Assembly (NCBI GenBank): GCA_047495785.1
Contig: JBLDXI010000024.1
Location: 372,001 to 436,000, forward strand
Reading direction: 5' to 3'
DNA: 64,000 bases
Source: Lepidodermella squamata
Taxonomy: Eukaryota; Animalia; Gastrotricha
A program made the translations under genes and the position numbers. Position 1 is the first letter of the stretch. Every line of letters begins with the position of its first letter. This document shows positions 3,251 through 63,154 of this stretch, in pieces. Under the pieces are notes generated by a model that was given only the letters and a program-made list of their open reading frames with translations, searched no databases and was not told the DNA's origin.

Positions 3251-4128
3251 TTCACTCAGTAATGCGGCTGCATAATCTTGAATAAAAATTAGGTAATGAG
3301 TTGTTCAACCTATATTTCATAATGAAAGGTACAGAAGGGAAGATTATAAAACCGTTGCATGTCATCAATGGATGGGTAAAATAATCTCTATGTAATAAGT
3401 AATACTGTATACGCGATAATTGTTAAATGAGCTACCAATAAATAAAAACGCGCTGAAATGGCGGAATATCTTTTCTTTGATAAAACTTTGCAACGGTACA
3501 AATTGCACAATTGAAATTGGTTTTTTTCATCACAGAGGGCTTCTATTTCCAACTTGAGGCTGCCGCGGGATCACTAGTGAACTCCACGCTGGCATAGATG
3601 GCTGGCATTTGACATTTCTTCGAGCACAGACCCAATAACAAGAAGGAAGAAGGACCCATCTCAGGAGTTCTGAGTCCCGGATCTCATATTTTCAGCCGCG
3701 CCAAATTTTGACTCAAATTTGTATCAGAAAATTACACTTTCCAAACAATTTTGATGACAGTCGAATAAATATTACACTAAAATGATTTCAATTTTTTTAA
3801 AAGTGGGCCGCCGCTCTTTTAAAAGCTCTTTTCGTAAGTCGAGCCAACGCACGGCAACAAATAACTTCTCTGTCAATCGATCAATATACCCAAGCTCTGT
3901 GATCAGGGCATTGTTTCCACCTTTCCTACTAATAGCTAAGTATTCTCAAACTCACCTGAACTTTTCAGAGAAAGTAGTTTTGCTGAGCTTCACGATATAT
4001 TTAGTAGCGCATCTGTTCCTGATAGTCTGTTCGTTGAATCTTTTTCTCTTTCACTGATTACTTGTCGTGAGTTTCACCTTGAATATTTCATGCGCATTGT
4101 ATGCTATTAGATAGTTTTGAGACAGATA
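3251..4128. promoter_or_regulatory. Divergent (head-to-head) promoter and 5'UTR region shared by ZMYND11 and IGF2BP
   Basis: The start codons point away from each other, 878 bp apart. No specific promoter motif identified. Confidence 0.4.
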
Positions 4129-6821
4129 ATGCAAGGTGAAAGCTCCACCTCCAACTCTCGGCGCCGCAGCAACCGGTTCAATCTACGAAATCTCCCAGAT
4201 TCTTATACTCAAGAAGATATCGCAACGTTTCTGGCTCCTTTCGGTAAACATACCAAGTTGGAAATTCACACCGCCGCTGATAAAGCAATCACCGTCGAGC
4301 TACATTACGAAACCCCGGAGGAAGCTACAGAAGCAGCTTCTAAACTATCTAAAGAGCAAGTCGATGGCAAAGCCTTGAAGGTTGACTTTGTTGGTGCTGG
4401 TGGCCGCTCAGGTGGTCGGAATCGTCAAGATAACTCAACTCGCATGCATAACAGCCTTGGTGGCCATGGGTCTCAGCAAGCATCGGCTAATCGCGCTGCC
4501 AATAACAATGACTTCCCGTTGCGCATTCTCGTTCCCACTGAAGTTGTTGGTGCTATCATCGGTCGCAAGGGCGAAACTATCAAGCAAATCACCCAAACTA
4601 GTCACGCCCGGATCGATATTCATGGCCGTGAAAACACAGGTCAAACTCCTGAAAAGGCCATTACTATCTACGGAACCCCTGAAAATTGCACTGCGGCCTG
4701 CAAGGAAATTTTGAAAATCATCGAACAAGAAATGAAGAATGAAGGAGCGAAGTAATTAACACCTGATTTAATTGATTGTTTCTATTATTATATTGATTTC
4801 ATGTTTCAGCGCTGATTTGGTTTTGAAGATCCTCGCTTACAATCAATTATGTGGACGTTTGATCGGCAAAGGTGGTGTAGTTATCAAGCAAATAATGTCG
4901 GAAACGAATACGAAAATAACCGTTTCTCGGCAAGAATGGTTCGCACCTGGAAACGTGACGTAAGTTCTCTGACGTCAAACTGAGCTGAGTTTCATATTTC
5001 AAATCATGTTTCGTTTCAGAGCGACTGATAGAGTTATCACTGTCAAGGGTGATCTGGACAACATGGCTCAGGCTGAATCGAAGATCTCCGAGCGTCTTCG
5101 TGCATGTTTCGAGAATGACTCTCAAGCTCAAGCACCTATGGCGCCCAATCCTGCGTTGAATATGTTTGCCCCTCCATTTAATCTTGCTCACGCCTCAGGC
5201 GGCCCTGGCGGCTCTCTGTCAGCATCATTCCCTCCGAATTATGCTGCTGCACCCGGTAATATGCAGCGCTTTCCTCAATTTCAAATGGCTCAGCCAATGC
5301 AGCAGCCTCCCAGTTGGTATTCGCAACCTCCTGGACCATGGGCCGGTGCTAATAACTTCCAGCCTCAGGCTGCTGTGAACTCGAACGCCATGCAGAATGC
5401 ATCCATGGTTATGGGCAGCGGTGGTCCGCCACCGAGCGCCGTCAACCAAATGGGTAGCCAGGCAGGCGCCAATGGCAATGCTGGCCCTGCCCAAAACGGA
5501 TCTGCCTCTGGCTGGCCGCCATCTGAAGTTGTAAATCTGTATATTCCCAACCTGGCTGTCGGTGCTATTATTGGCCAAAAGGGATCCTACATTCGTAAGA
5601 TTATCCAGTTGAGCAAAGCCTCAATCAAGGTAGCTCCTCTGCCGAAACAACCTGAAGAAACTGCTGCCAGCGGTGATAATGCCAACACTAACCGCGAAAG
5701 AATCGTCACTATTTCGGGCACGCCCGAGGCTCAGTGGAACGCCCAGTTCTACATTTTCGATAAGATCAAAACTGAGGGATTTTGTGGCAATGACGACCCG
5801 CGACTGATGACTGAAATTACGGTGCCCAAGTCGAAAGTAGGTCGTATCATCGGCAAAGGTGGTCGCAAGGTTCGTGAAATTCAGCAGCTAAGTGCTGCTG
5901 TTGTAAAGCTTCCGGAGCAGCCGTCGGATCAGGGTGACGACGTTAAAATTCAGATCATTGGCAATTTTTACGCCAATCAGACAGCGCAACGCTTCGTCCG
6001 CGCCCTGTGCTCGGCTAACCAGATGCCAAACGCCTCGATGCCCCTCGCTGGGCCACCTTCAGCTGGCGCCGGACCTCAAGCCGGCTCGTCGGCCTATTCG
6101 GCTGCGGGTCCGCGCAGCCAACAAGGGCTTCAGCAGAACCGAATGATGATGTCTGGTCCTCATCAACAACCAGGAGTTGTCGGTCACCTGCAGCAGCAGC
6201 AAGTCGGTTTGAACGGAACCATGCCGATGCCTCCGTCATTCGGCACCATGGTGCCCCCTGCCCTCAACCATCACTACCCGGGTGGCGCTCAACCACCGTA
6301 TGGCCCTCCGCACTACGGCCACCAGCAGCAGGTAATTTTGGTACTGAAATCAACTTAAAGTTCACTCTGTTTGAATACGTTTTTTATACCAGCATCCTGG
6401 TTCATATCAGCAACATCATGGCCAAGTTCATGCATCTCAGTACGGCCATGGTAGCGGACACCAGGCTTCGGGCCATCAATACCACCATGGTGGCAAGCAG
6501 TCTGGCGGCAACCAGGGACGAGGGAACCGCAACTACCAGAGCAATAAGGCCGGTTTAGTGGTTCCGCCGCCTGGCACCGTGCTATCGAACTCTACCTCAA
6601 AGGACAAGGAGACGAATGGTGCGACGAACGGCTCGAACCCGAACCTTGCGAACGGCAACGCTGCGACCAGCGAGAACGTGAGCAATGACGGCGAGAGCAC
6701 GAATAACGAGGCGCTGAATCACGAAAACGGCAGCAGTGGCTCGCCGACGGGCGGCGAAGAGGTCAACGACCTGCCGACTACGCCTGGCGCGGTCCCGGTG
6801 GCGATCGAGGGCAGCAACTGA
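4129..6821 (+). CDS. IGF2BP: IGF2 mRNA-binding protein / Imp (1 RRM, 4 KH, low-complexity tail); 4 coding exons
   Basis: RRM RFNLRNLPDSY..HYETPEEA..LKVDFV. KH1 FPLRILVPTEVVGAIIGRKGETIKQIT; KH2 LKILAYNQLCGRLIGKGG; KH3 LYIPNLAVGAIIGQKG; KH4 ITVPKSKVGRIIGKGG..QIIGNFYANQTAQ. Introns at about 4752-4810, 4960-5019 and 6332-6392. Confidence 0.9.
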
Positions 6822-30793: not shown

Positions 30794-33526
30794 CTAGATA
30801 TCGTCCCAAAGCAGGAATTGATTAGGTGCGCGGAAGAGAATAGCCAAAGTGACGAGCATTGTCACAGACAGAAAAAGCATCAGCAACAGTCGATCAACTA
30901 TTGCAGCAGCCTTAAAAAAAATTGTCAGGGTGATTATGATCGAAAGCAGACTGAAATTACCTGTTGCCACTCCAAGCTAATAGCGTCTTTTAGCTCACGT
31001 TCGCGGAGACGCCCTTCACTAATATCAGCCATATTGTTGGCACGTCTGATAATCATGTCCAACTTAGCTTCGATATGGCTAGACATGAGGGATATTCGAG
31101 GCGAAAGACCATTATTTGTATTGTTCATATTAGCTGCCATTGTGGTTGGTGTCGTAGGTTCTGAGGTCGTAGGCCGCTGATTGAATCGGGCAGCTCGAGA
31201 CCCTCCGCGTCCTTCTAGTGTTGAGCCATCATTGTTACTCAGCATGAATTGCGTTTCATCTTCATCATCGACGGTGAACTCCCCAGGCATTCGGCTTGTA
31301 CCGCCGATTTGATCGCTGAATGCAACTGATCGGCGCGGTCTCGCGATGCCGTCCTCGCCCATATCCACGAGCTCTGTTTGACTGTTGTTTCTATTCGCGC
31401 TCCTCGACCTCATTCGCAGATTCCATAAGCGTTCAGACTGTAAGTTGGCACCAGGTCTTCTTTCTAAACTAGCACTTTCAATCTGAATGTAAAAATCAAT
31501 TGTTTAGATGAAAATTGTAAAAAATGACCGGCTAACAAACCGGATTCCTCGAGTTGGCGGACCACTGCGAACCGACAGGGTTTTGCTGTACAAGATCGCG
31601 AACAAAGCGTGGGTTTCCGGCTGCGTCTTTACCCCCTCGAGACATATTAGGCCATTGTAGAGCTGAGCCTAAACTTCCAGGCATTTGAATCCCAGAACAA
31701 ACGGCTCCATTGCTGAGGAATCGAGAAGATTCAGCACCATTAGCTCGCGCTTCCTCTTCGGCTTTCATTTTAGCCTTTCTTGCTTTAGCCTCCTCGAGTA
31801 TATGGCTATTAGGCAGATGGACTCGAAACAACACGAATCTCGCCAAAATTTGGAAACAAATGAATCGCAAGAATTTTGGCAGCCTAATGCCTCGTTTGCC
31901 TTTGTGATGAATATTCAAAGTGAGCACAGTCATCGCCGTGGCACATGATACCACAACAATAGTGAAACCGTAAAATAAACCGAGCAAAGGAAGTTGGTTC
32001 TTTGTTGGTGGCATATTTTCCGCAACCACCATCAAAAATACGGTCATGGAGCTAGACAGTATCAATTTTTAAAATCCTGAAATATATGCCATTCCTATTC
32101 AACTTACAGCAATGTTGTAATACCCATCGTCACTTTTTCACCAGAATCTGATGGAACATAAAAACCCAAAAGGGCAACCAAAGTGATCCTAAAACATCAA
32201 GAATCATCATCGTAGCCGGTTCAATAAACTTGAAACTTACAAAATGCATGGAAGCATCATATCTAGAGGGAAAAGGTTAAATTTACATGTAAGGTAGAGA
32301 TAATTTGCGATTGAAACTTACTGTAAACGTAAAATAGTGGTCTCCTTCGAACGACCACAAAATATCTATAACAGACAGAGCACGTCAATAAATTATATCT
32401 CTACTAAAAGTGTGACTTACGTTATGAAAGGATAAGGCTCGTTGGGACAGCAACTGAAAAATTTGACCTCTCGATGTTGTATGAGTTTTACCAAATGCCA
32501 TTCAGTGTTTTCAATGTAATTTGAAAGATCTCCCTCGACACCATTAGCTTCAATGTTCATCTGGATTAAAAAAGGTTCGGGCTAGATCTATTTCAAAATT
32601 AAACATGAATTTACCTGAAAGCCGTCGTAAGTCCATGAAGCAAAAAACAATGAGCAATTTTGCTCATCGAACGGAAACTAAAAACAATAATTGATGCTCC
32701 GTAATTGGAGAAATTGATATTACTTACATATTTCACATCGATAGCACAAGTACTGTAAAATTATTTGCGTAAAATCGTAGTATAAATACCTGGATTAACA
32801 TATTCGAAGGGTAAACGAACCTTTTGAAAATCATCATTGACAGCCAAGTAACGTTTCCGTCGTATTGAGCGATTACATTGGTACTGACGGCAGATACATA
32901 GGTCATCACGTCGGCGTTGTTGTAAAGTAATATATCTGGTAACCTAAAAACAATAAAAACTCACATGATTGGATTTCACCTCGATTTTCCACATTTGTTA
33001 CCAAATGGTGTTGTATGGTAGCCTTATTATTTTGATTCCATCGAATTTCTCTGGATCCCATTGAAGCTGAAAGTCAAGCCAGTGCTGATTTAGCCAGCAA
33101 TTCGTTGTAACAACTTGATTTTTCTCATCCTATAATAAGCGGCAATATTTTCGTAACTGAAAACTGAAAGCTGAAAACACGTACCACGTCAATTATTTGG
33201 GACAGTGCCAGCCCAAATGTTACATTAAGTACTTGGGTGACGGATTTCACTGGTCGGACGCGTCTGTCGTAGTTGTCCAAAAGGTAGCGAAGCAGCTTGT
33301 ACTCGGCTGGTTTCACCCTATCACGCCGACCGATACCACCCCTAGGCGGACCTGGAACCATTTCACTTGCATCGTCCTCCAAACTGACGCCTGATATTTG
33401 ATCGAATGGATTCTGAAGTCTGCCAGGTTTAGGCACGCTCTGAGCATCAGCGAGGGAGAGGCTTGAACTGCTTTGCAAAACGAATACAACCACGAGTAGT
33501 ACTAGATTGACAAGCATGGAAACCAT
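30794..33526 (-). CDS. Nicotinic acetylcholine receptor alpha subunit (alpha9/10-like, cation-type M2); 12 coding exons
   Basis: Signal peptide [17 protein letters not shown]; [12 protein letters not shown]; [11 protein letters not shown]; Cys loop [15 protein letters not shown]; loop B SWTYDG; vicinal cysteines FSCCPNEPY; M2 [29 protein letters not shown]; M4 [17 protein letters not shown]; TAG at 30794-30796. Confidence 0.92.
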
Positions 33527-36500
33527 GGCGAGAGCCTTAGCCAAGCGCCCGCTCCGATCGCAGTGAAACTGCTGATCATCAGACGGCACCGTTATCGGCA
33601 CAGACAGGTGCCGAAAGGGTGCTGCGAATTCAACCAAGTCTAAAAGTGTCAACAGATATTAAATGTTTACAGTGCAAAAGTAGAACATTTCTAATATAAT
33701 ATTCAGCTGAAAATTCACACAACAACATCAATAGATTGATATCCGTAAAGCATTTACCTCTATTGAAAGAGCGATTGGCCATGAGTGGTGCGGATGTCGC
33801 TCGGTCACCGAGCTGCTTTTCTAGGCTCTTCATCCAAAAATAGGAAGATATTAGCCTGGAGAAGCCTCATACAGCGCGAAGGGCTGCTTTCCAGAAACTC
33901 GTTTCCATGAAATTTCGAATAGTTAGCGCTACTTATTTTCCATAGCTCGAAATTCTTCGGAAATTTTTATTGACAAAAAGACACGGTACCTCTACTCCAG
34001 CCTCATTTCATTCAATTAAGAAAAAACTATCGAACAAAAGCGAGAAATTAAACTGGTAAATTGTGGTATGCAAAGATGTGAGTCAAGAGTTTTACAACAC
34101 AGGTGGAATGAATTGTCATATATGGCTGTGTAGTATCGAGCGTGCGGCATGCTCATTCGCAGGGACCGCGCACCGATCGCATGATGATTTCGCACAGATG
34201 AATATACGCAAAAAGGTGGCAATGTATAGCAACACCGATCCCAGTCTCATTATTTATACTGGAGTGCATCTCCAGTTGTCGACTAATACACACTTGGTCG
34301 GTTTTAATTTATTACCGCTCCTCTTGCCAGGCAAGTTCCGATTAAGTTGTGAAGTACGGTGTAGCAAACAATCGATAAAAGCTTTAGCTACTTAGGGCCA
34401 ATTCGATGAATTTAATAGCCAAACAGCTAAAGTTGAGCCACATCGCCAGTATCCTCCGGCGCTATAGTATACTAGCGAGCGCTGCAGCCACCGTCTGCCT
34501 ATTTGTCCACTGTATTATTGTCTTCTACACTCGTTAAAATAAAGCTATGAAAGCAGTGTGAGACGGCAGCCGAATACACATTTTGTAGAAATAGTGTAAT
34601 TACTGATGTTTTACGCATAACAAGGACGGCTTTTTGACGAATAAGGTTTGATCTATAGGGCGTAATAAGATGTGCTAGTTTTCTTGTGCGCTTTTTTAGG
34701 TCCGCAAAGCTACGTGATGAAAATTAATAATTAAAGTTTGGTTGCACGCGATCAGAATGGAATGCGGCGCATGCCACGAGGCGCAACTCTTCTTCGCCAG
34801 AAGTTGATAGTATCTAGCGGCACTTGACCAACCAATTTGTTGTCACCTTTTAGCAGCATTCATTCAACTGGCCAAGTAGGCAATAAGGATTGACATATTA
34901 TTTGTTTAAACAGCAGAAAAACCAAAACAAATCACCCTGTTATCGATTGATCGCGGCAATCAGGCGAGAGAAAAATAATGGCTGTGCAAAAAACCCTAAA
35001 ACTGCTCAGGCGGTGCCTGACGATGAACAATATTTCCATCCATTAAATAACATGAAGTAAAATATAAGCGTATTTATTATTGTTGAGAGATCCTAATACC
35101 TGTTTTCGCGGCGGCAAATCGTTGTCGGAGGATGGGAGAAGACATGCTGATGAAATTAAATGCTGTGTTGTACGCACGGCATCCCCTGTGGGATATTTAT
35201 GCGCCACGAGAAAAATAATCAGAGGCGTTATTTTACGGCGCGAAAATGAAATAAAAACGCGCGCATGATACGTGAGCGATGGTCGCTCAGTTTTGGTATC
35301 GATACGAAGAAGAGTCGCGTAAGCGTTGCTCATCTCGCGGGCATCGCTGTCTGGGATCGTCGGCTGCTGTTTCACACAGCATTGTACTGTCCACGTAATA
35401 TAAATGATTGAAAAAATCGGCGTACATGTTCGAAAAGCGGCGGCGATGATTTCGTAAATTGAGGCAACCGCCGGACAACTAGGACTTTTTCGACATGCGC
35501 GATGTGAAATAGAATGCACCAATACTACAAAATATCATAAAGAATGAGACAACAATTCGTTAGAGGATTGTTGCCGAGGTTGTTGTTTCGTATTATTCTA
35601 GGTCTACTACTACTATGAGTTTTATGGGCAGGAAAGAATCAGCTGGCGTATCAGAAGCGATTTCTTCTACATTTCTATCAGACAGCGATTCGCTTGTAAT
35701 ATGTCATAATGGCAAAAATATTGAAAATAAGAGGCAGATAATCTGGAATGCGCGCAAAATCACGACACACACCACGTCGATAGCCGGCTAGTTACGATGA
35801 TACACGGCATATCATTGTCTACTAATTTGGTTCAGGAGTACTGATAGATTCAGGAGCCAAGAAAACTATCGTCCATCTGAGAAGTTAGTCAATCAATATA
35901 TTTTTAAACATGCTGCGATACATGACCATTTTACACAAATAACATCATCATTGAAAGTATAAATTAAGCCAGCGCGTACGGTTGATATATGGTGGGATGC
36001 AGATGAAACGAGGAAATCGAATCTTGACCAAACGGACGCGGCAGACAATAGCTGTCTTCTAGGGTAGAATCATTGTATGTTAATGCTATTATTAGAAACA
36101 TCGTTATTTATTTTACTATTACTACAACAATCAAACCGTGCGCTAGTACACTGATTGAAATATGTTCACTACGTTCTATTTTTAAGCGTAGCGTTTTGCT
36201 GATTTGGTCACATGCATTTGATGATAAAACCCTTTTGGCAAATTGCCCCGATTCGCAGTCACATGCTCATACATTTTCCTTTCGCCAAATGAAAAAAACG
36301 GTGATAGAAAGCTTCTCAAATTGAGGTGGAGGATGGTATGATTCCTGATGGCGTCATAAATTATTGCTATCTACTATCGTTTTATTCTTGGAAAGACAAG
36401 CATCTCGCACTCAGCTGTAAAGAAATCGACGCCAAAATCCATGCCGTCAAAATATGGTCAAAATTTGTTCATGCTTCAGAGTATGAAATTATTTTTACGA

Positions 36501-36813: not shown

Positions 36814-39649
36814 TCAGAATGGTTCATATACGCAGACTGTACACCGACTGATTCTTTCAAGAGCATCTTCATTTTTTAGCATGGTAACAACACGTTCGGC
36901 ATCGCTCACAGGAAGCGCGTCCATGGCTAGCAGCCAGTAACTGGAAAAAGCGGTAATCCTAATTGAATCGAAATTTAATGATAATCAACTAACCTCATTT
37001 TATCAGGGTAATAATGACAAGATCCATCTGGCAGGCATTCGATGTAAGGATTCGCGCGGTATTCTGCCAAGCAAGATCCAGGAGAGTCCAACGGTTGACC
37101 CCCACCAACACTTCCAATGGCATGCTTAACGCGGAATAAAAAACGCTCAAGATTTGTTCGTAAATATGCTTGAAAATTATTACCATAAGGAAAGAGAAAC
37201 CATTCCATAGCTGTCGCCAGGCCGCACCAGGGCAGCTTGGAATAGCGGTTGTTTGAGAGTGGATGGTCATCACAGGGCCACGAGCCGCACAAACTACACA
37301 TCGAGAGATATACTGTATGGTCCGATCGGCGCCTCTGACTGGCATAGGTGCTTCATTTGATGAATAACCAGACGGCATCTCGTGATCCTCATTTCCCTCT
37401 CGATTATCGTTGCGATGATTATCGCCAGACTTGGCGTTAGCTCTTTGCTGATTCTTCCCATCGGAATTGCCGTCAGATGATGGGTTGCCAACGCCTCGCC
37501 GCCTGTTGAGATAAGCTAACGTTGTCTTCGTACGGTTCAAAGTGCCCAACACGCGGCTGCTCGCTAAGAAGTAAGTAGCTGCAGAGCGATGGGCCCAAGT
37601 ACTACAGAAAGCAACATTTACAAGTAAATTAATCAAGGTCCAGATTTGATGTGGTTACCAAATCTTGTTGCTGCCACAAAACAGAAATGGCATGGGGTCG
37701 AAGGCCCTCAAGCATGAGCCGGGTCGCCCCAAGTCTTGAACATTTGATCGCCCATCGTCCTCTGTATGTAAAAGACTGAACCCTGTCCACAACAGAGCAT
37801 GGCCGTTGCCGCATTGTGGGCTGATCGTCGATTGGGAATGGCGAACGTAAAAGAATGGTAGCGTAACTAATGGACCTGGTGTGCCTGGTTCGCCTTTCTC
37901 ACCCTTGCGACCTGGAGGTCCTGAAACCTGTTGGCTTTCGCCAGGTGGACCAGGTGGACCAGCGTCTCCCTTCGGCCCAGGATATCCCTTTGAGGAAAAA
38001 AGCAGAATGATATAGCCTAAGAGTAAATCGTGTTGACATCAAAGTTACCTGAGGTCCAGGTTCGCCCTCGCCCGGCTCGCCTTTCTGCCCACGAAGTCCA
38101 GGAAGGCCAGGTTCTCCCGGAGGCCCGGTCTCTCCAGGGTCTCCACGTTCTCCTTTTTCGCCTTTGAGCATGCTTCAATTATGAACATATTAAATTCACG
38201 ATCAGCAAGCTTAAAATGAAATGAAGAACCTTTCGTCTAGAAGTACACGGTCGCCTTGTTCACCTTTGGGACCCCTAGGCCCTGGTGGGCCAGGTGGACC
38301 CATCGCTTGCTTGCAGCCACAACCTTAAATTTCGGATGTTCAAATAATGCATTCCTTTTCAAGTTTCTACTCACCTGGTAAGCCATCTCGCCCGGGTGGG
38401 CCTCGTTGACCCGATTGACCCGGTGGTCCCGGTAGGCCAGGCATACCAGAGGGACCAGGTGGACCTGGGGGACCCTATAGAAAACAAATGATGCCAAAAT
38501 TGATGCGAGGAATGGATCAAGTCATTATACATCTGGGCCGATTCTGCTGTAGCAGCTGCAGCTGTCTGCGTTTGCACACTGGTAAGAATTGCTTTCAGGT
38601 TGAGGCATCGGCGTAGTCGTTTTTTTATGCGAAAGAGCGCGACTCTTGAGTGATTTGCTCCGAGCAACAGCTCCGATTGGACCTGTGTGACCGTGTTTCT
38701 TGCGTTCCTCCTCGTTGATCATCTCAGGATGATCCTTATCTTCGAAAGCTTCGGGCAGATCCTGCCACGAGGAGCTCGCAAGCCGCAGGCCGTTAGTCGA
38801 CAAATCGGGCGATGTTGACGAGTTGACAATAGGTGCCATCAATATCATCGAAAGCTCATCCTCTTCGATGTTTTCGTTTGTAGCGTCAGTATCGTGGGTT
38901 CCATCAATGATAGTCACCTCACTCGATCGATGAAACTTCTGCTCAGTATCTAGATTTTCCAGCTGGTGCATTTCTCGCTCCTCTTGGTACATGTGCTGGA
39001 ACTGGACAGTCTCAACACTAGGTAACGCATCTGATTTTGCCTGGGTGATATTAGCTATCGCCTTGGCTAGTAATGAAGCCGATTCTAATCCGCTATCAGT
39101 TGGAGGCACTGTGGGCACTGCCTCCGCAGCTGTTGATGTGCTAGCAGTAGCTGGCGTTGTCGTCGATGTCGTCGTTGCTGGTTCAATGGTTGACGTGGAA
39201 ATCACGTCTGCTAAAAGTGCCTCCGCTGTTGGGGATAAAGCGGGTGGTAGGGGAGGCGCGGAAGGTTTTGGTGGGCTCAATCGAAACGTGCCATCCATGA
39301 CGAGATTTTTCGACAACTTCTCCGCGAGATGGGGAGGTAAAGTCACAACCCGAGCTGAATCTGGTGACGGCAGAGCGCATGCGTATAGTGGTCCCGTTCC
39401 AGCAATGGCTAATATTGCTGGAAAGAAATAGTTTTACAAAACGTTGTAGGCTGAGGCAATTGAGTTACCGAATGCGAAAGCCACGCTTTCTGAAAATAGC
39501 ATACTACTAGCGCTCTTGACAGTTCTTTGATAGCGCTTTCGAGGGTCGTTCAAATATCCGACATGGTGGTGTTTCGGAGATTGATTCCTAGAGAAAGTTT
39601 GCACCAAGCTTTGTATAAGACGGTGGAAAAATTGGCGCAGGGCCGACAT
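36814..39649 (-). CDS. Short-chain collagen IV-like protein (hydrophobic leader, mucin-like region, ~41 Gly-X-Y triplets, complete NC1)
   Basis: Gly-X-Y exons between about 37870 and 38475. NC1 repeat 1 [43 protein letters not shown]1 repeat 2 [56 protein letters not shown] at 36814-36816. Start is ATG 39649 or 39502. Confidence 0.85.
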
Positions 39650-40408: not shown

Positions 40409-42482
40409 TTATGCTTTTCGCTTGTGAGCCATCCGAGCTCGCCTTCTGCGTTCAGTCTCGACCAGCTCCTCGACAAAACGAACGCCGCGTTCGACTTGAG
40501 AGGCCGACCCGGCGACAGTGACCAGGCGTCTATCGCTACCTCCGTCTCGACCGCCGACTGACACCCGCGCGCCGCCGCTAGCCCGGCCGATTTCACGCAG
40601 GCCCTTACCGCCAGGGCCGAGAACGACCCCGACCAACGAGTCTTCGACGTAGACCTCCCGCTTCATTTCATTGCCCTGGTCCATGCCGTTCCCGCCACCC
40701 ATTCCACCCATGCCGTTCATCCCATTCACGCCATTGCCGTTGGCTCCCAGAAGACCGGCCATGCCAGCCATGTTAGCCATGTTGGCCATGTTCATTCCGG
40801 GTGGGAACATTCCGTTTGCTGCAGCAGCGGCTAGGGCAGCGGCAGCTGCGTTTTCGTTCATGCCCATGCCTTGATTGCCATTTCCTGCGTTCATCGACGA
40901 ATTGAGGCTGGCATTACCGTTGGCAGATCCGTTTGATTGAAGATTCGCGACTATATCGTGAAGGCTACCCACTGCTGATAGCGAAACTAGGAGATCTGAA
41001 ACAGCAAATCAGTAAAAACCTGACGGAAATGGTAGAAAATCTTACTTGTGATCATTTCGTTATTTTGGCCAATTCCGGGGAGCAAATTGTGCTTGGCCAA
41101 AATCAGCAGGGCTTGGATGATCTCATCCTGGGCGATGGGAGCATAACGAGATGCGTCGAGAAGGCCGCGCAATTTGTCAAGGCTCGCAGCAGCCGAACGG
41201 GGTAGATTCATTCCACCAATGGTAAGACCGCCCCCGTTAGAAGCACCCCCGTGACCACCCATCAGGCCAAGCTGGGCACCCAAGGCACTCAAAGAACCGG
41301 AATTGCCGTTACCATTGTCGCCGAAACCTAGTTGCTGTCTCAAGTCCGTATCCATCATGCCGCCTTTGTCATTAAGGAGAGGCTGAAGGTTGTGTTGTTG
41401 CTGCATGCGGTCTTGTTGCTGCTGAGCAGCGGCGGCCAGTTGCTCCATGTTACCGGAATTACCGCCGCCTCCGAAAGCCGCAAGCATGCCTTGCATGCCG
41501 CCGTAACTAGCCATCATAGCCGCAGCCTGGTCAGCGTTGGGACCCATACCAGGAGGCATTCCCATCCCGGGCATGCCCATACCACCCATCATACCAGGGC
41601 CCCTGGGTCCGAAAGGATTCATACCAGGCATCATACCCGGCATCGGCATTCCCATCATTCCACTGAGCATCGACGCGGCCTGGTTGCCATTCATCTGATT
41701 ATCGTTGTTACCGCCACGACCGCCGTCATTGCGGTTCCCACCCCGGCCTTGGCTCTGACCAGAAGGCAGCTGCCCGCCACCGCTGTTGTTCCAATGCGAA
41801 ATGTCTTGGTTTGACATGTGGTTAGGGTCCTCGCTGATTTTCTGAACAACCATTTCACAAGCCCGGTCGACACCGTCTTCGTTATCCCCCTCAACAGTAA
41901 CAATTCGTTCGTTACCGCCGTCGACGGACTCGGATTTCGAGGATACGATCGCCTTGACACCGCACAAGTCACTGATTTCCTTGATGTGCGAACCACCTTT
42001 GCCAATAATCATGCCGGCACTTGTGTTCGGGACTACGAACTTCACCTGTTTATGGCGATTGTTGTTCGTACGGCCCTGAGGATCCTGCTTCGGGTTCGGA
42101 TCCGGCTTCTCAACAGCTGCAGAAACATAGCGATAACGCAACACGTAAAATTGAGACAACTCGACTTACTTTTCCGGTGAATGTATTTGACCAGTTCGAC
42201 GACGCCGTCCAGGGGTCCAGTGAGCATGCAAATTCGCTCATTGACCGTGCCCGGGTATACGTCATCTGGCTTCGACATGCGACAACGCGCGCCAACTCGT
42301 TTTTGCAAATCAATGATAGCCTCGCCGCCCTTTCCGATGATCGAGCCCACGGCTAAATGGGGCACCAGCAACTTCAGGTACAGAGCACCGGGTTCGGCGC
42401 CGTCGTGGTCGCCCATCGATGAATCCCCCCGGCGGACTCGCTTGTTTCCGCGTTGGTATCCTGCTCCTTCATCATCGGACAT
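40409..42482 (-). CDS. NOVA: Nova/Pasilla-like 3-KH RNA-binding protein, copy B (2 coding introns)
   Basis: KH1 YLKLLVPHLAVGSIIGKGGEAI..RMSKPDDVYPGTVNER; KH2 QVKFVVPNTSAGMIIGKGG; KH3 VEDSLVGVVLGPGGK. Introns at 42117-42169 and 40996-41045. Confidence 0.85.
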
Positions 42483-43811: not shown

Positions 43812-45311
43812 TCAAGCTTTACGCTTTTGACCACTAGCACCCACTCTCTGCCGTCGCCGCTTTTCATTAAGCAGTAAATCTTCAACAAATCGCTGGGCTC
43901 TATCGACTTGCGACACAGTTCCGCTCAGTGTGACCATGCGGGGCTGGCCAGCGTCGCCCTCATTTCTATGGGAGACGGTTATATGAACGCCACCACTCGC
44001 CCTGGCGATTTCTCGCAGGCCGCGACCTCCCGGTCCGAGGATTACACCGACCAGCGCATCTTCCACGGGAACTTCTCGCCGGATTTGAACGTCATCTTCC
44101 TCTTTATTATCGCTCGAACCACCGCCGGCATTGCCGTTCCCAAATGCAGAGAACATGTTACTCCCACCAGGGAAAACGTTCGGGTTCTGAGGCCCACCAA
44201 AACTCGATTCATTAGGTTGGTTCGACAATTCGTGAAGGCAGCCGACAGCGGACAAGGACACCAATAAGCTTGTAATTACGTCGTTATTCAATCCAACACC
44301 GGGTAGTAGATTGTGACGCGCGAGAGTGACCAGAGCATGAATTATTTCATCTTGCGCAGATGGAATATAGCGCGAGGCGTCCAACAAGCCGCGAAGTTTA
44401 TCCAAGCTTTCGGGGCGAGGCATCATTTGAGGACCGCCATCTAAAGACGGGGGCAAATTTTGCAAAGACGATTGCGACTGAGTCATTGCTGCAGCAGCGG
44501 CCAACATGCCTCCATAATTCATCAGCGCTTCAGGCCCAGCACCTGGCATGAAACCTCCTCTAGAAAATGGCGACATCATTGGCGGGATCATTGGGTTTCC
44601 CTGCATCGGGCCACCTCCGGATCCAGAATTCATACCGCCACCTCCAGACATATTCCCCGAAAGATGCGGTGATGGTGCAGGATAATTGAGCTCAGGGAAA
44701 GCAGCGTGATTAGGATCCTCTTTCACTTTTTTCACTATTAGCTCAACGGCATTGTTCACCTCGTCCTCTTCGCCATCGATTTTAACGACGCGCTCATTCG
44801 GATAATCTTCGTTTTTATTTGCGACAACCGCATGAGCATGGGTGGTTTCGTTTATTTCCTTTATGAAGAAACCGCCTTTTCCGATGACTAGGCCAGCTGT
44901 TGAATTTGGAACAACTAGCAGCACCTGCTTGTGGCGGTTAGGATTAGGCCGTCCGCTGACGTCAACCTTTGTATTGGGATCAGGTTTTTCGCGAATTATC
45001 CGATGGATGTATCTGATTATCTCAAGGACAGCCTCTTCAGGCCCAGATAAAGCGCATACTCTTTCGCTGGTAGTGCCAGGATATACCTCGTCTTGCTTGG
45101 ATATTCTACATTTCCCGCCAACACGCTTCTGAATTTCAATAATTGCTTCGCCTCCCTTGCCGAGTACCGCACCCACGGCGATCTGAGGAACAAGCATCTT
45201 GATGAAAACTTTGTCGTGAATGTCATCTGACTCTTCGTTGGCTAGCGCGCTATCGCCGCGGCGACTCCTTTTCATAGTTTGCCCGCCATCGGGCGTGGAA
45301 GCTTCATCCAT
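43812..45311 (-). CDS. NOVA: Nova/Pasilla-like 3-KH RNA-binding protein, copy A (intronless CDS)
   Basis: Single ORF. KH1 IKMLVPQIAVGAVLGKGG..YPGTTSERV; KH2 VVPNSTAGLVIGKGG; KH3 VEDALVGVILGPGGR; C-terminal KRKA. Confidence 0.85.
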   Translation of the reverse strand: MDEASTPDGGQTMKRSRRGDSALANEESDDIHDKVFIKMLVPQIAVGAVLGKGGEAIIEIQKRVGGKCRISKQDEVYPGTTSERVCALSGPEEAVLEIIRYIHRIIREKPDPNTKVDVSGRPNPNRHKQVLLVVPNSTAGLVIGKGGFFIKEINETTHAHAVVANKNEDYPNERVVKIDGEEDEVNNAVELIVKKVKEDPNHAAFPELNYPAPSPHLSGNMSGGGGMNSGSGGGPMQGNPMIPPMMSPFSRGGFMPGAGPEALMNYGGMLAAAAAMTQSQSSLQNLPPSLDGGPQMMPRPESLDKLRGLLDASRYIPSAQDEIIHALVTLARHNLLPGVGLNNDVITSLLVSLSAVGCLHELSNQPNESSFGGPQNPNVFPGGSNMFSAFGNGNAGGGSSDNKEEDDVQIRREVPVEDALVGVILGPGGRGLREIARASGGVHITVSHRNEGDAGQPRMVTLSGTVSQVDRAQRFVEDLLLNEKRRRQRVGASGQKRKA

Positions 45312-48300
45312 TTGAAACACTTCAAACTGAAAAAGAGATAGGTAAGCATTAGTTTTAGTATAAACTGATCAGAATTATATGTTGATATATTTACGGAAAA
45401 TCCTACAATCACGATAACAAGCAATGAAATCATACCATGTACGCTTTACCTTGGTCCAAACTTGACAGAGTGGATAACGATGAGGAGGTCAAGTAGGCAA
45501 TCAAAGTAAGAAAAAGCGCTCTAGAGTGAAGATGAATGAAGGTAAGAAATAGAAAGATGAGCACAGGTTGAGTTGAACTTGTATCCAATTTTATTAGCTC
45601 CAATAAAACAGCATACCAAAGGCCAACAGATCAAATGATCAGAGTATCAAACAGATTTTTCCTCGATTTGAAAAAGCGATGACCAAGTGAAGACGAATGA
45701 AAATATTACAGGTGACTCAATCAATTAATATCTAACTCGCATAAACCGTAAAAATGTAGTACGAACTTTGCACCAATACGAGAAGCCGATCCAGCCGGCG
45801 AATGCCGCCAACTGGTATTAAAAATAATCCATCAGTTGAAAACACGCGATTGAACCACGATCACTGACCGAATTGATTGTTCACGGCATTGGCTATGACA
45901 GCTTCGAGAAGGCAGCCATCGGCCGAAACTCTAGCCTTATATGTGAATATAAAATAAAAATATGATATACCTACATCATAAAAATATAATTAAAAACTAT
46001 GCTCTGCTTTTGGATGTCGCGAAGTAGTCAGCGGCAAGTAAATACCAGCATACTTCAATTGTTCATTCGATTGGAACGTAGATACCAATTAGCGCCTCAA
46101 GCCTCAAGCCTTAGTCAAATCTTAGTAAGGGAGCTCAGGGAAAAGGCGTCAAAATAATTCGAAAGGGATAAATTATGGCCCGAGCTCAAAGCTCAAACTT
46201 TATTGAGTCGTTTGTTTTTATCATCTTCATTCTCAATGGCGTAGTGAATAGTAACTATAATCTATAATATCGCTTTGAAAAGATAACAAAGCTGAAGCTG
46301 AAGTCATTCAGAAAATGGTGCCAAACTGGTCAATTTCAGAATTTCAAAAAGAGAGGGGTTAATGCGGCTATTTCCTTCGCGTACTATGTAATGGGACTGT
46401 CTACGCCACGCGCCGCTGAAAGAGACATCACACGACGAGAGCGGCTTCGCGCAAAAAACGACTCCCTTCGAACGCGCCTTCAGCAGCCCAGCGCATCGCG
46501 CCATTGCTAAAATTTCCACGATTAATATCACACAGTTTAATAAATAATAAGCTTATTTTTTGTTCTGTTATGCAAATTATATGTCATGTTAGTCCGCGAA
46601 TTATTTTTCTTGCGGTTTTCTGTCGCCAAGTCGGCGGTTTCTCGGTGCCATTTCAGGGATCATACCAAGTTTACAAAGGACTCAAATCGGAACTTTTATC
46701 TTTGAGACTCTTTTCTTCGCTTCCAAATTCCACATTTTTCACTAGGTAGACATCGAAGCATTCAATTGAACGCGTAGCGATATAAGAAAACCGGTCGCTA
46801 TTACCCGGGCCGTGAAGAGACTTTGAGCTTGATGTCTGGAGCTTATTTTTGTTACTGCAGATCATACTGGTTCATTGAGGCTTTATTTGTTGGTAACCTT
46901 CGCGGGCTATTGGATATCTACTTTCTACTTTCAATTTTCTTGTTGCGCTGCCCGCTGCCCCTGCTGCTTTAAAAAGTTTTCCTTGACGTCACAACATCTG
47001 CATTCTGCATTTTGATAGTTTTGGCTTATTCCTTATTCGCCAGTAAGTAAAGGATTTGGGTTTTAAAGGAGTTTTAAAAGTATACCATTTTTAAGTATAT
47101 GACCTACGAGCCATTAAATCTGGATCTAGGCTTCGGGCATATTTAATTAAGCGCTGTTACGTCATCGAGAACCAGTATTTTAATCTGATATTTTTGTTCC
47201 CGTGTCACTCCTACCAGGAAATGACTGGATCTTATTGCTCTTCATTATTGTTTTATCTATGCAGTTTCGGAGAAAACGTTCAGGACAAGTTAGTTCATTT
47301 GTCTATGCCTATTTCATCGCTAGTTATCATTTCTCCGCCACAATTTCGGAACTCTTAAACTCGACTTGGAATGCTTGTATTACAGTGCGCTTTTTTAATG
47401 GATAATCTGTTGTTTCTTTTATTATCTTTGCTCTAAATTTAGGCTAACAGAGGAGCCTCAAAACTAGCGAAATAATTACTGCAGTTCAAAGGATGAATCG
47501 ATTTCATCGATAAAAGGCTGTCGATGTCATATTAGGCTAGTACATTATTACTCTGTAAATTTTTTCGGATCGGTGATCGGTAAATAACGAAAGACTTGTA
47601 AATGAGGAATTTCAGGGCCTTAAATAATTCGAATTAGAGCTTCGATAGCCGTATTTGCGGTTTTCTGCGAGCCTCGATTACTTTGTTGTCAATGGGTGCC
47701 ATCGCTTATCAAAAACACGGTATACGGTGTCATTTCTATTTCTTATAGCGATTTCATACATAAACTTTGCATAAAATATTTTGAAATATACCATACAACT
47801 ATTTTTACCGCTCGAAGTCAATCTCATACAGCCGATAGGATCCGTTTTATTGGTTTCTGGAAATCGGTAGTTTGCGATAATAACGAAATCAAATTGTAGT
47901 GATTGATTGATGTGACATCCTTACCTGATCGAACCTGATCGAACCGAGGTTTTCCTCGCTTTCTATTTTAGGTTTCGCTTATCAGGCCGTAACTAAATTT
48001 TAGAAATTCTATATTCATTTTTGAATATATTTAACTTCTAACCGATTACTTCTTCATTTAGAGCGAATGCTAGCGTTGCTGAATGATTGCTCTAATTATC
48101 TTCATTGTGATATTCACCGGTTTAAAAATCTGCGTTATCGGCTTTTCTATTTGCTCAGCATGAATTGATTTATTTCAAATAGCAATCAGGCGAAACGATA
48201 GCGCTGGATCCAACAACTTGAGTGTCTAGAGCAAATATTTTGAGACCAGTTCTCGAACGCGCTATATTTTTGCCAGAATCTTCAGTAGAGTGTGAATATA

Positions 48301-56679: not shown

Positions 56680-59490
56680 TTGGACTGTTTGTACTATAAT
56701 TTTAGATCTATTGTTCATAAAGTTGATATTCTTATCGATATTATTCTCAACCGTCCTGTAAAACCAAAAATTATAGTTGGAGTTGAAAGCTGGCTCTCTG
56801 ATGATATTGTGCTTAACGAATTGAATAATCTTGGTTATGAAGTCTTTAGGTGTGATAGAAGTGACTGCGGCTCTCCTAGCGGAGGAGTTCTCCTTCTTGT
56901 CTCGAAAGAGTTGTCTCCTATTGAGATCACCAAGATGTCCTCGCACATGTGTGAAATTCTGATTTGCGATATTTTTGTGAACAATAATCCTCTCCGTATC
57001 TGTGGTGTCTATCGATCTCCCTCGGCTCCATTAGATGGCACTTTGATGTTGAATAAATTTATATCCGAGCATCTTAGTGACAAATTATTTGTCCTACTTG
57101 GGGACTTCAACTTTCCGCAAATTCGTTGGGATTCATATGATGTTGTTCGTGGTGAAGCGGCTGCTAGGAAATTTGTAAATACCATTCTTGACTTGGATGC
57201 GAAGCAGCTTGTTTCTTTCCCCACCAGGAAGAACAACACACTTGACCTTATATTTTCAAATAGCTCATCTGTTGTTACCAAGATTGATTCGCTGCCTCCG
57301 TTTTACACATCTGATCATGTGTCGATCGGCTTCTCGCTGTCGTTCTCTGATTATACCATGCCGTTGTCTCTTAACCCTGTCAAGTTATTGGACTTTCATC
57401 ATGTTGACTTCCCTGGCTTTGAGGTATTCTTGGCATCTGTTGATTGGCAGAATGTGTTCGCTAATTGCTGTGATGTTAATGCCATGTATAATGCGTTTGT
57501 TGAGGTTATTTCCCATGGATACTTCAATTTTGTTCCATTGAAACAGTTTTCCAAGCAGCGTAAAACTACGCCTTGGTATAACAGAGATTTACATCGCCTC
57601 ACACGCCTACGTGAAAAATGGTGGAAATTATACTGCTCTCGTAAACGTCAATATGACCTTGATAAATTTTATAAATTATCGCGGAAATGGAAGGCTGCAA
57701 ACGACAACTTGCGCGCTGAGTATGAGATGAGGGTAGTAAGCAATGGCAAAATCAAAAGTTTTTACCGTTATGCTAATTCTCGCTTGAAATCAAAACCATC
57801 CGTTCCTAGTTTGCGTTCTCCGGATGGATCTGTAATATCTTCGGATGTCGGCAAATGTAATATTTTAAACTCCTTCTTTTCTTCTGTTTTTACTATTGAT
57901 AATAATCTACCAATTCCTCCTTCCGCTAATCCTTGTTCTTCTGAATTGTCCAGAATCAATTTTCCTGTGACGATTATTGAAGGCTTTCTCAAAAAGATTG
58001 ATGTAAACACGTCTATGGGTCCGGATTGCATTCACCCGACCATCTTACGTAATTTATCTAACTCTTTGTCTTACCCTATGTCTCTAATATTCACTGCTAG
58101 TTTTGAAAGTGGTGCCTTACCAGACCTTTGGAAAATAGCAAATGTTATACCCGTTTATAAAGGCTCTGGTTCTTCCTCGTCATGTGAGAATTACAGGCCT
58201 ATTAGCCTTACCAGTGTGCCTTGTAAAATAATGGAATCCGTTGTTAAATTTGACATCTTATCTTTTTTATTAAAAAACAATTTGATATCTCCGTCTCAAT
58301 TTGGTTTCCTCCCTGGTCGTAGTACAGAATTACAACTGCTTGAAACTGTGAATGATTGGTCTCGCACTCTTGATTGTGGTAAATCTGTTGACTGTATATA
58401 TTTTGATCTCAAAAAAGCATTCGACTCTGTGTCCCATATTAAATTGTTATCCAAATTGAAATACTACGGTATAAATGGCCCCCTTCTTGATTGGATAAAT
58501 TCTTTCTTATCAAATCGCTTTCAGCGTGTTGCAATCAATAATTCTTTCTCTGCCTGGTCAAATGTCTCATCTGGTGTCCCTCAGGGTAGTGTACTAGGTC
58601 CACTGTTGTTTGTTATATTTATCAATGATCTTCCTAAAGTGGTGAAACATTGTATTATAAAAATGTACGCTGATGATGTTAAGCTGTATCCTAAGCCTGG
58701 CATTTCTCCTGAACTTGTGCAATATGACATAAATTCTGTAACGAATTTTTTTATCTTACATCAGATGTCTATTAATATGAGCAAATGCGTTGTTCTTAGA
58801 CTTGGTCATAATAATCCTTGTTTTCCTTACTTTGTAGCTGATAATCCTATTAAATCTGTTTATGAAATCAAAGACCTAGGTGTTATTATTGATTCTAAAT
58901 TATCATTCTCTTCTCATTGTAACTACATATACAATAAAGCTAGACGTCTTTGTGGCCTAATTCTTAATTCCTTTGTATCTCGTGATTCCTCTGTCTTAAT
59001 AAAAGCTTTCAATTCTTACGTGTTACCTTTATTTTTATATTGTTCCACAGTATGGAATCCGACTAATATTACCGATCGTAAGCTCCTTGAAAAATGTCTA
59101 AAAAATTTCTCATCCCGATTGATTGTCCCTCCTTTCGCCCCGCTATGTTATTCCGATCGGCTTAGTAAATTCAATATTTTATCTCTTCATCAACGATGGA
59201 CCATTAGAGATCTCCAAATGACTCATAAAATTATTCACAACCATAGCATTATACCTCCTAGTGATTTCTATATTCTACCTTTTTCGGATAAGACTAGGTC
59301 ATGTCACAACAGCAAATTGATTCTCCCACCATGGCATCATAAGTTTAGGTACTCTTCCTTTGTTATTCGCTCTTCGCTTCTATGGAACTCACTACCAAAT
59401 GAGTTAACATGTATAATTTCTTCTTTGATATTTAACTGTAAAATTCATAAATTTGTTGTTTCATCTTTGCCTATTTTGCCTGTATCCTAA
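56680..59490 (+). CDS. LINE ORF2: AP endonuclease plus reverse transcriptase
   Basis: APE motifs YYNFRS, GVESWL, GGVLL, VYRSP, LGDFN, LDLI, SDH. RT motifs NYRPISLTS, QFGF, DLKKAFDSV, GVPQGSVLGPLLF, YADD, KDLGV. Confidence 0.95.
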   Translation: MDCLYYNFRSIVHKVDILIDIILNRPVKPKIIVGVESWLSDDIVLNELNNLGYEVFRCDRSDCGSPSGGVLLLVSKELSPIEITKMSSHMCEILICDIFVNNNPLRICGVYRSPSAPLDGTLMLNKFISEHLSDKLFVLLGDFNFPQIRWDSYDVVRGEAAARKFVNTILDLDAKQLVSFPTRKNNTLDLIFSNSSSVVTKIDSLPPFYTSDHVSIGFSLSFSDYTMPLSLNPVKLLDFHHVDFPGFEVFLASVDWQNVFANCCDVNAMYNAFVEVISHGYFNFVPLKQFSKQRKTTPWYNRDLHRLTRLREKWWKLYCSRKRQYDLDKFYKLSRKWKAANDNLRAEYEMRVVSNGKIKSFYRYANSRLKSKPSVPSLRSPDGSVISSDVGKCNILNSFFSSVFTIDNNLPIPPSANPCSSELSRINFPVTIIEGFLKKIDVNTSMGPDCIHPTILRNLSNSLSYPMSLIFTASFESGALPDLWKIANVIPVYKGSGSSSSCENYRPISLTSVPCKIMESVVKFDILSFLLKNNLISPSQFGFLPGRSTELQLLETVNDWSRTLDCGKSVDCIYFDLKKAFDSVSHIKLLSKLKYYGINGPLLDWINSFLSNRFQRVAINNSFSAWSNVSSGVPQGSVLGPLLFVIFINDLPKVVKHCIIKMYADDVKLYPKPGISPELVQYDINSVTNFFILHQMSINMSKCVVLRLGHNNPCFPYFVADNPIKSVYEIKDLGVIIDSKLSFSSHCNYIYNKARRLCGLILNSFVSRDSSVLIKAFNSYVLPLFLYCSTVWNPTNITDRKLLEKCLKNFSSRLIVPPFAPLCYSDRLSKFNILSLHQRWTIRDLQMTHKIIHNHSIIPPSDFYILPFSDKTRSCHNSKLILPPWHHKFRYSSFVIRSSLLWNSLPNELTCIISSLIFNCKIHKFVVSSLPILPVS

Positions 59491-60682: not shown

Positions 60683-63154
<2,472 letters not shown>

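Follow-up and report, generated by a model that had tools for sequence, protein, structure and literature searches.

In the gastrotrich Lepidodermella squamata (GenBank assembly GCA_047495785.1), positions 372,001 to 436,000 of contig JBLDXI010000024.1, a stretch of 64,000 nucleotides referred to here as the window, contain a gene that, judged by its sequence, encodes a genuine short-chain member of the collagen IV family, lineage-specific and with a canonical NC1 domain. The gene lies on the minus strand at 36814..39649 (window coordinates and minus strand apply to all of its features below) and encodes 796 amino acids. Collagen IV is generally regarded as a very long, nearly invariant network former, with two chains in most invertebrates and with the spongins, whose NC1 is degenerate, as its only short relatives. 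Here a canonical NC1 that retains the hexamer-interface and sulfilimine residues, and that is more strongly constrained than a core protein of the respiratory chain, is carried on a helix one-tenth of the usual length, behind a mucin-like stalk and a start resembling a membrane anchor. We think it reasonably probable that the gene is functional and expressed and that its product, a short-chain collagen IV specific to this lineage, would act by the mechanism proposed below.

A canonical NC1 domain with one insertion

The NC1 domain comprises residues 502-796 (36817..37870), a total of 295 residues with two C4 repeats and 12 Cys (521, 554, 566, 572, 673, 676, 695, 729, 741, 747, 788, and 791). 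Profile PF01413 matched exons 6-9, covering profile positions 2-63 in repeat 1 and 2-30, 36-71, and 75-109 in repeat 2, which bears out the claim of a first-pass annotation, made from the letters of the window, that both C4 repeats of a collagen IV NC1 are present. Collagen IV NC1 chains in the PDB (human, cattle, and Drosophila) were matched by exons 6 and 7, as single chains, at E values of 9e-28 and 4e-17. These searches were run with single exons, or with the large exon of the ortholog described below. The domain aligns end to end with a vertebrate alpha1 NC1 except for one insertion in the linker. Both HSQ motifs are kept, as RHSQS and IHSQT (37829-37843 and 37250-37264), and so are the equivalents of Arg76 (37586-37588), Glu175, Met93, and Lys211, where the human alpha1 NC1 numbers are those that we counted on the aligned PDB chain. 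The Met93 equivalent of the sulfilimine cross-link, Met658 (37343..37345), lies 15 residues before the Cys of an ISRC motif, as in human alpha1, and the Lys/Hyl211 equivalent, Lys777 (36874..36876), lies 11 residues before the Cys of the C-terminal ISRC, within TMLKNED as compared to STLKAGD.

The insertion, which the first-pass annotation had passed over, is 68 amino acids long (residues 588-655; 37352..37555), is rich in Asn, Asp, Gly, Ser, and Arg, and is placed between the two C4 repeats, just before the Met93 equivalent. Its counterpart in the ortholog has 70 amino acids and is 34% identical, with a conserved sequon (NRT here, NKT in the ortholog) and a conserved KTTLA..NRR.G at its start. 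The possibility that it conceals an intron was rejected: the insertion is in frame, it is covered in every bin by contigs of the sequencing run X2 (see below), no contig joint skips it, and the ortholog counterpart is of similar length.

Helix, Cys cluster, and stalk

The collagenous domain, residues 357-501 (37871..38474; exons 3-6), contains 145 residues and exactly 41 Gly-X-Y triplets in five runs, with an internal GCGC, in agreement with an earlier estimate of about 41 interrupted triplets. Pro predominates at the X and Y positions, and Pfam Collagen matches were obtained on exons 3-6. There are three interruptions in all, among which [17 protein letters not shown] and ESQQVS are conserved. 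If it were triple-helical throughout, the helix would measure about 40 nm. An RGD in the helix (GERGDP) is not kept in the ortholog and was not used in the interpretation.

Directly before the helix lies a Cys cluster of the form Y-Q-C-x5-C-x-C-Y (38549..38584), a candidate interchain disulfide knot that had been noted previously ([12 protein letters not shown]) and is indeed present. It is preceded by a non-collagenous stalk, residues 80-335 (38594..39361), in which Ser, Thr, Pro, Glu, Ala, and Asp account for 56% of about 255 residues and which includes a mucin-like Thr/Ser/Pro block at 39092-39199; the P/T/S/E-rich N-terminal stretch of the first-pass annotation corresponds to this region. 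Most of the stalk is predicted to be disordered. For exon 2, AlphaFold2 returned a mean pLDDT of 42.6 from an alignment of three sequences, a result consistent with disorder, which is as far as so shallow an alignment allows it to be read. The sole long helix in the model, at exon-2 residues 134-164 with a pLDDT of 54-69, lies in a region that is deleted or unconserved in the ortholog. Pfam assigned no family to the 295-residue exon 2, and a search of the ESM Atlas with the stalk gave no usable look-alike.

Gene structure, transcripts, and variation within the species

A three-frame reading of the minus strand between 36700 and 39700 gave nine exons, where eight had first been proposed, with 796 codons followed by a TGA stop at 36814-36816. 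The eight introns, 51-61 nt in length, are all of the GT..AG type, and a stop codon is found in frame directly upstream of the start codon, ATG 39649. Exon 1 (39469..39649) encodes the start codon, a basic N-tail of 49 amino acids, and the first part of a hydrophobic segment, and ends in phase 1. Exon 2 (38531..39417) completes the hydrophobic segment and goes on through the stalk and the Cys cluster to the first GPD of the helix, which continues through exon 3 (38375..38474), exon 4 (38230..38323), and exon 5 (38049..38172). Exon 6 (37659..37987; Pfam C4 at E 2e-20) completes the helix and encodes the bulk of the first C4 repeat, which finishes in exon 7 (37184..37601; E 1e-11). Exon 7 also holds the insertion and begins the second C4 repeat, whose middle is encoded by exon 8 (36994..37124; E 7e-9) and whose end, together with the stop codon, is encoded by exon 9 (36814..36940; E 5e-3), in which 36 of 37 residues are identical to those of the last exon of the ortholog.

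Two public sequencing runs contain the stretch, here called X1 (2024) and X2 (2015). Of the sampled words, 92% occur in X1, which may itself be the data behind the assembly. X2 carries the label of another organism, and 74 of its 96 aligned contigs are at least 99% identical to the window; its classification as RNA is a guess, for which its intron-skipping contigs provide the evidence. These skip 36941-36993, 37125-37183, 37602-37658, and 38324-38374, which correspond to introns 8, 7, 6, and 3 and have CT..AC ends on the plus strand; at intron 3 the joint is 38323/38375. At intron 4, loose contig ends at 38175 and 38230 bear letters from the opposite side and give the junction 38172|38230. Hence, five of the eight introns (3, 4, 6, 7, and 8) are backed by X2 contigs, with no joint listed for introns 1, 2, and 5, and because the contigs skip introns, X2 contains spliced cDNA of the collagen gene. 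A lack of transcripts would have told against the first-pass annotation; spliced ones exist. The junction between exons 5 and 6 is supported by colinearity with the intron-free ortholog only. For the middle of the gene, a model with a donor at 38248 and an acceptor at 38161 (model A, with an 87-nt intron) was ruled out by the X2 joint 38172/38230 and by the ortholog residues LLDES(M/L).K. The coordinates given above are those of the other model (model B, with exons 38230-38323 and 38049-38172 separated by a 57-nt intron), extended to ATG 39649.

Comparison of X1 and X2 contigs with the window revealed 19 exonic variants. Of these, 17 are synonymous, among them every one of the 14 located in the helix and the folded C4 parts; both of the non-synonymous variants fall in the NC1 insertion. 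In exon 6, X1 contains two haplotypes, roughly equal in depth, with 9 differences in 193 bases (4.7%), all of them at third codon positions, which indicates very high heterozygosity in the animal. Haplotype variation in X1 was noted at 37655-37847 and at 37038-37167.

An ortholog and strong purifying selection

A HMMER search of the full library with exon 7 returned 452 matches, of which one was below 1e-30. This match (P0001) is a fragment of an open reading frame of 107 amino acids, 66% identical, that runs into the same intron, and it was found on three metagenome contigs (L001-L003). On one of these, L002, a single intronless open reading frame of 473 codons runs from the last part of the hydrophobic segment through the stalk and the Cys cluster and takes in the entire helix and the first C4 half. 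The assembled ortholog has five exons and 756 amino acids. Since it is intronless and colinear there, with residues continuous across the sites of introns 2-5, it supports the junctions of those introns independently. The ortholog helix counts 152 residues and 43 triplets, and all three interruptions recur in it. An ortholog that encodes the whole helix without introns at nearly equal length shows that the short helix is real and maintained and not an assembly collapse, and the suspicion that Gly-X-Y exons might have been collapsed or lost can be set aside. Orthology is further supported by a neighbor common to both species: directly downstream of the collagen gene lies a gene for a Cys-loop (pentameric ligand-gated) receptor (31535-33652, minus strand), which has the same strand and position in the ortholog species and is 55% identical, including its poorly conserved N-terminus. 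Together with the retained sulfilimine residues, the receptor gene points to a cnidarian or bilaterian animal, Cys-loop receptors not being known from ctenophores or sponges.

The difference in introns is an observation in its own right. All four of the introns 2-5 in the window (38530 to 37988; phases 0, 1, 2, and 0) are absent from the ortholog (L002:2380-3826). Introns have thus been gained or lost recently in this collagen gene, and no 54-bp exon pattern is followed.

A codon alignment of the two species gives a proportion of synonymous differences (pS) of 0.75-0.9 in each region, which means that synonymous sites are saturated throughout. Despite this, the proteins are 94% identical in the two C4 repeats (insertion excluded), 86% in the Cys cluster (residues 336-356), and 74% in the helix, while identity is 49% in the N-tail, 34% in the insertion, and 31% in the stalk, where there are short conserved islands. 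A yardstick is provided by NDUFS1, the 75-kDa subunit of complex I, a large exon of which lies at 61706-63154 (plus strand): identity is 80% between this fragment and the NDUFS1 of the metagenome sample to which L003, an ortholog-bearing contig, belongs. Purifying selection on the NC1 is extreme. NDUFS1 is moreover 62-66% identical to its homologs in molluscs, hemichordates, vertebrates, crustaceans, and annelids alike; because it is equidistant from so many phyla, and the 80% match is an unannotated metagenome protein, the lineage has no close annotated relative in the protein collection. A search of the ESM Atlas with NDUFS1 shed no light on taxonomy. A word-index protein search with the 472-residue exon of the ortholog found, for the helix and C4 half, only fragments of ordinary collagen IV; no annotated protein spanned the N-region. 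The same search with the N-region only returned nothing, a weak blank given that the record of the query itself was not returned either.

The N-terminus and a proposed mechanism

The N-tail, residues 1-49 (39503..39649), has 9 Lys and Arg residues and 1 Asp or Glu, and contains an amphipathic LRQ..RL.Q.L and the motif NDPRKRYQR (39524-39550). The ortholog shares the initial M-S, the LRQ..RL.Q.L, and all nine residues of NDPRKRYQR, in which the codons differ by six synonymous and no non-synonymous changes, and the balance of charge is alike in both species (9-11 Lys and Arg vs. 1 Asp or Glu). There is no Met in the ortholog between the first ATG and the hydrophobic segment. The invariance of NDPRKRYQR in the face of synonymous changes, together with this lack of an internal Met, indicates that the N-tail is translated and constrained. 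A start at ATG 39502, which would leave a plain signal peptide of 26 amino acids, was rejected for the same two reasons.

Following the tail is an uncharged hydrophobic segment of 24 amino acids, residues 56-79 (39362..39484), split by intron 1, a phase-1 intron that interrupts the segment at the identical place in both species. The uncharged stretch is 21 amino acids long in the ortholog, the Kyte-Doolittle maxima over 19 residues are 1.86 (window) and 1.74 (ortholog), and the same scale shows no second hydrophobic peak in the protein. The segment was assessed by hydropathy and charge. The first-pass annotation had proposed a hydrophobic leader. The hydrophobic segment itself is present; that it is a leader in the sense of being cleaved off does not stand up as well, given the conserved N-tail, which makes a type II signal anchor the likelier of the two. 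The very positive N-flank would, by the positive-inside rule, place the N-terminus in the cytosol and the collagen outside the cell. Retention of the segment as a type II anchor is slightly favored over cleavage by signal peptidase: a conserved tail of 40-49 amino acids is ordinary in type II membrane proteins and rare in signal peptides, for which an n-region of this length is very unusual, and related genes of the lineage bear ordinary short signal peptides.

A similar layout is known from the MACITs (collagens XIII, XXIII, XXV, and COL-99; also XVII), which have type II topology with a short cytosolic tail and possibly link the cell surface to the basement membrane (PMC4678570). The likeness extends to the predicted topology, with the N-terminus inside and the collagen outside, the short cytosolic tail, and the short interrupted helix. 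In MACITs, however, a juxtamembrane coiled coil nucleates folding, there is a conserved furin site, and C4 or NC1 domains are lacking, whereas here the NC1 is the likely trimerization module. No conserved coiled coil was found in the ortholog alignment or by AlphaFold2, and in both species a reading of the stretch from the hydrophobic segment to the helix showed no R-x-x-R. No sequence relationship is claimed.

In collagen IV the NC1 is the chain-selection module, which selects and registers three chains and nucleates folding from the C- to the N-terminus (Fidler 2017, PMC5395295), and two NC1 trimers form a hexamer that is fixed by peroxidasin through Met93-Lys211 sulfilimine bonds (PMC5395295). 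By analogy, we propose that three chains of the short collagen would be selected and registered by the C-terminal NC1 and that the helix would zip from C to N, to be stapled by disulfides from its own conserved CxC and from the C-x5-C-x-C cluster that adjoins its N-end. The distal NC1 trimer might then dock head-to-head on another NC1 trimer, either of its own kind or of network collagen IV, and peroxidasin might fix the docked pair through the Met-Lys sulfilimine bond. Docking and cross-linking appear feasible because the interface and cross-link residues are kept. Having no 7S-like N-terminus, the protein would be unable to extend a network, and it would instead act as a terminator or tether. 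With the anchor retained, it would be a cell-surface stalk hooked covalently to the basement membrane or to its like on another cell; once cleaved or shed, it would be a soluble cap. The NC1 insertion, which is variable, charged, and predicted to be glycosylated, may tune or gate docking, or may equally block it. The first-pass annotation had suggested capping or decorating of basement-membrane networks, or a lineage-specific cuticle or adhesive matrix. Capping or tethering is the one role among those proposed that finds support at the level of the sequence, from the interface and cross-link residues kept in the NC1 and from the lack of a 7S-like N-terminus; trimerization, the hexamer, the cross-link, and localization are predicted.

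Taken to its full extent, the proposal describes the first membrane-anchored collagen IV, a type II mini chain that would form NC1 hexamers in trans with network collagen IV or with itself, be locked by peroxidasin, and have its docking regulated by a glycosylated insertion. We put this forward tentatively, as an idea that is at present rather unlikely to hold in every part. Were it true, it would amount to a direct covalent tether between cell and basement membrane that bypasses receptors of the integrin type. Nothing on a membrane-anchored collagen IV, or on a short chain with a canonical NC1, was found in the open literature. More broadly, the gene opens questions about a role of NC1 apart from the network, about covalent hooking of cells to basement membranes, and about the diversification of collagen IV in an animal lineage that has been little sampled and has a whole clade of mini chains, and it offers a natural small construct of NC1 plus short helix for studies of assembly.

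Several observations weigh against these proposals. In the NC1, D78 of the chloride switch is replaced by Ala and N187 by Asp, and the 68-residue insertion beside Met93 could hinder hexamer formation. The strongest hydrophobic core of the N-terminal segment measures only 11 amino acids in the window protein and 16 in the ortholog, its sum on the Hessa scale is marginal at +2 to +3 kcal/mol, and the window protein has a good cleavage site, A-C-A before L-P. X2 depth thins out toward the 5′ end, with none above 39596, which leaves the first 50-150 coding nucleotides without RNA support, and coverage is so thin that the contigs cannot prove absence. Function is here inferred from sequence, and the canonical COL4 pair and the peroxidasin of this genome were not seen.

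Some of these same features speak for a rival reading, in which the long N-terminus would be a signal peptide that is removed, leaving a soluble, mucin-tailed mini collagen that would cap the NC1 ends of the network or form free dumbbell-shaped dimers of trimers in a lubricating, adhesive, or cuticular matrix. The short core, followed by G-T-G-P and a site with small residues at -3 and -1 (the A-C-A noted above), and the positive Hessa sum fit such a secreted protein, as does the mucin-like, disordered N-region, which is typical of secreted matrix proteins. On the other hand, the constraint on NDPRKRYQR is hard to explain for a discarded peptide, the n-region is of the exceptional length already mentioned, the best cleavage context in the ortholog is poorer, and related genes make do with signal peptides of 20-25 amino acids. 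A secreted form is accordingly to be regarded as a possibility, if not a strong one, and as the rival that fares best.

Relatives of the short collagen IV gene

Phylogenies of NC1 domains show that the gene is not a lone oddity and is part of an expanded clade of mini collagen IV genes in its lineage. In the unrooted tree, 18 canonical chains ranging from sea anemone to vertebrates are split from the other nine rows, which include this protein, with support of 98/100. When the tree was rooted with prokaryote-type C4 proteins, six mini-type NC1 domains (this protein, its ortholog, P0160, P0158, P0023, and P0067) formed a clade (100/99) on a stem of 0.82; the point at which this clade attaches among canonical animal chains was not settled by the rooted tree. 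The NC1 is 51-56% identical to those of the mini-clade relatives and 42-51% identical to those of canonical chains. Those of the relatives that were looked up come from unannotated ENA metagenome assemblies and, for P0158, from a Logan assembly. The mini collagen IV genes of the lineage have in common with this one signature stretches such as LHTED(D/E)GR..VQDLG and an equally placed intron (...K-M/A | RLV read-through). Neither the literature nor the cluster look-up of the nearest NC1 relatives yielded an already described short-chain C4 family to which the gene might be orthologous.

In a related species, contig L004 carries at least three tandem mini collagen IV genes on one strand (2339-2584, 3102-5056, and 5739-6026). 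Both of those with visible starts begin with an ordinary short signal peptide of 20-25 amino acids, and one runs almost straight into Gly-X-Y. A paralog on this contig has a helix of more than 300 residues over three exons and an NC1 51% identical to that of the protein described here. The gene in the window differs from its relatives in several respects: the mini collagen IV genes of the lineage that were examined have longer helices that start almost at once, and none of the others (P0067/L004, P0031, P0023, P0160, P0158, and P0003) has the N-tail, the stalk, or the 68-residue insertion.

The tandem genes of the related species raise the prospect that the protein is one subunit of a heterotrimer, assembled with mini collagen IV chains from other loci of the genome in the manner of alpha1/alpha2, as would also befit the role of NC1 in chain selection (Fidler 2017, PMC5395295). 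Yet its helix of 145 residues is much shorter than that of the L004 paralog, whose NC1 shares only half of its residues, and neither the window nor the sequence searches produced another gene like it in N-tail, stalk, or helix length. We therefore consider a heterotrimer improbable.

Two side observations concern P0003 and a set of C4 proteins. P0003 (770 amino acids; ENA contigs) is a short collagen with two complete NC1 domains in series, with four C4 stretches by Pfam, and has very long branches in the tree. Six metagenomic proteins of 295-430 amino acids (P0002, P0004, P0006, P0007, P0008, and P0012), matched in the exon 7 search, have two full C4 repeats (PF01413, E 1e-56 to 1e-65), prokaryote-type N-termini, and no collagen repeats, and form a single clade, which served as the outgroup; P0004 matches the N-terminal methylation (pilin) motif PF07963.

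Comparison with known collagens

Canonical collagen IV alpha chains (COL4A1/A2; emb-9/let-2; Cg25C/Viking) have the same two C4 repeats, 12 Cys, two HSQ motifs, Arg76/Glu175/Met93/Lys211, and an interrupted helix. In contrast to the protein described here, they have a helix of about 1400 residues and a 7S domain, and they lack the basic tail, hydrophobic segment, and mucin-like stalk, as well as the 68 residues before Met93; their NC1 domains fall outside the long-stemmed clade. Canonical genes also often form head-to-head pairs, whereas no other collagen or C4 coding sequence was found in the 64-kb window, so that the earlier remark on the missing adjacent partner holds within these limits.

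Spongin short-chain collagens, reportedly treated by Aouacheria and colleagues in 2006, have the same gross plan of a short helix and a C-terminal domain related to the collagen IV NC1. They are widespread in invertebrates (PMC5395295). The spongin NC1, however, has no HSQ motifs, shares seven Cys with collagen IV while lacking four of the collagen IV cysteines, has three Cys of its own, and by modeling has no domain-swap region (Fidler 2017, PMC5395295), its C-terminal domain does not match PF01413 (PMC12749355), and the spongins of Nematostella have been described as having “derived NC1 domains” (PMC12549020). Given that it has the two HSQ motifs and the full set of 12 Cys and matches PF01413 strongly, the protein encoded in the window is very unlikely to be a spongin short-chain collagen, and its reading in the first-pass annotation as a short-chain collagen IV variant with a canonical, non-spongin NC1 is upheld. 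This contrast is drawn from published criteria, the NC1 trees having covered canonical chains from sea anemone to vertebrates, mini-type domains, and prokaryote-type C4 proteins. That the gene is an assembly artifact or a decaying pseudogene of a full-length collagen IV, for which the unusually short helix is the only argument, deserves almost no credence in view of the intact frame, the spliced transcripts, the colinear ortholog with its conserved neighbor, and purifying selection both within and between species.

Precedents exist for a collagen IV NC1 outside of the classical long-chain layout, such as the stand-alone NC1 of ctenophores and a gene in Ministeria (PMC5395295; bioRxiv 10.1101/2023.10.18.563013), and the copy number of COL4 has been reported to vary in protostomes. 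The ctenophore NC1 is without Met93 and Lys211 and uses a cysteine loop (PMC5395295), unlike the protein encoded here, which keeps both residues.

Other features of the window

Rfam gave zero matches over the whole window. A 936-codon open reading frame at 56680-59490 (plus strand) was taken for a LINE in the first-pass annotation. There are three KH-domain genes within 40 kb (5006-6358, plus strand; 40409-42159 and 43812-45320, minus strand). The upstream neighbor of the collagen gene is a KH-domain gene on the same strand, with a long low-complexity tail rich in Gly, Met, Asn, and Ala (40409-40972).

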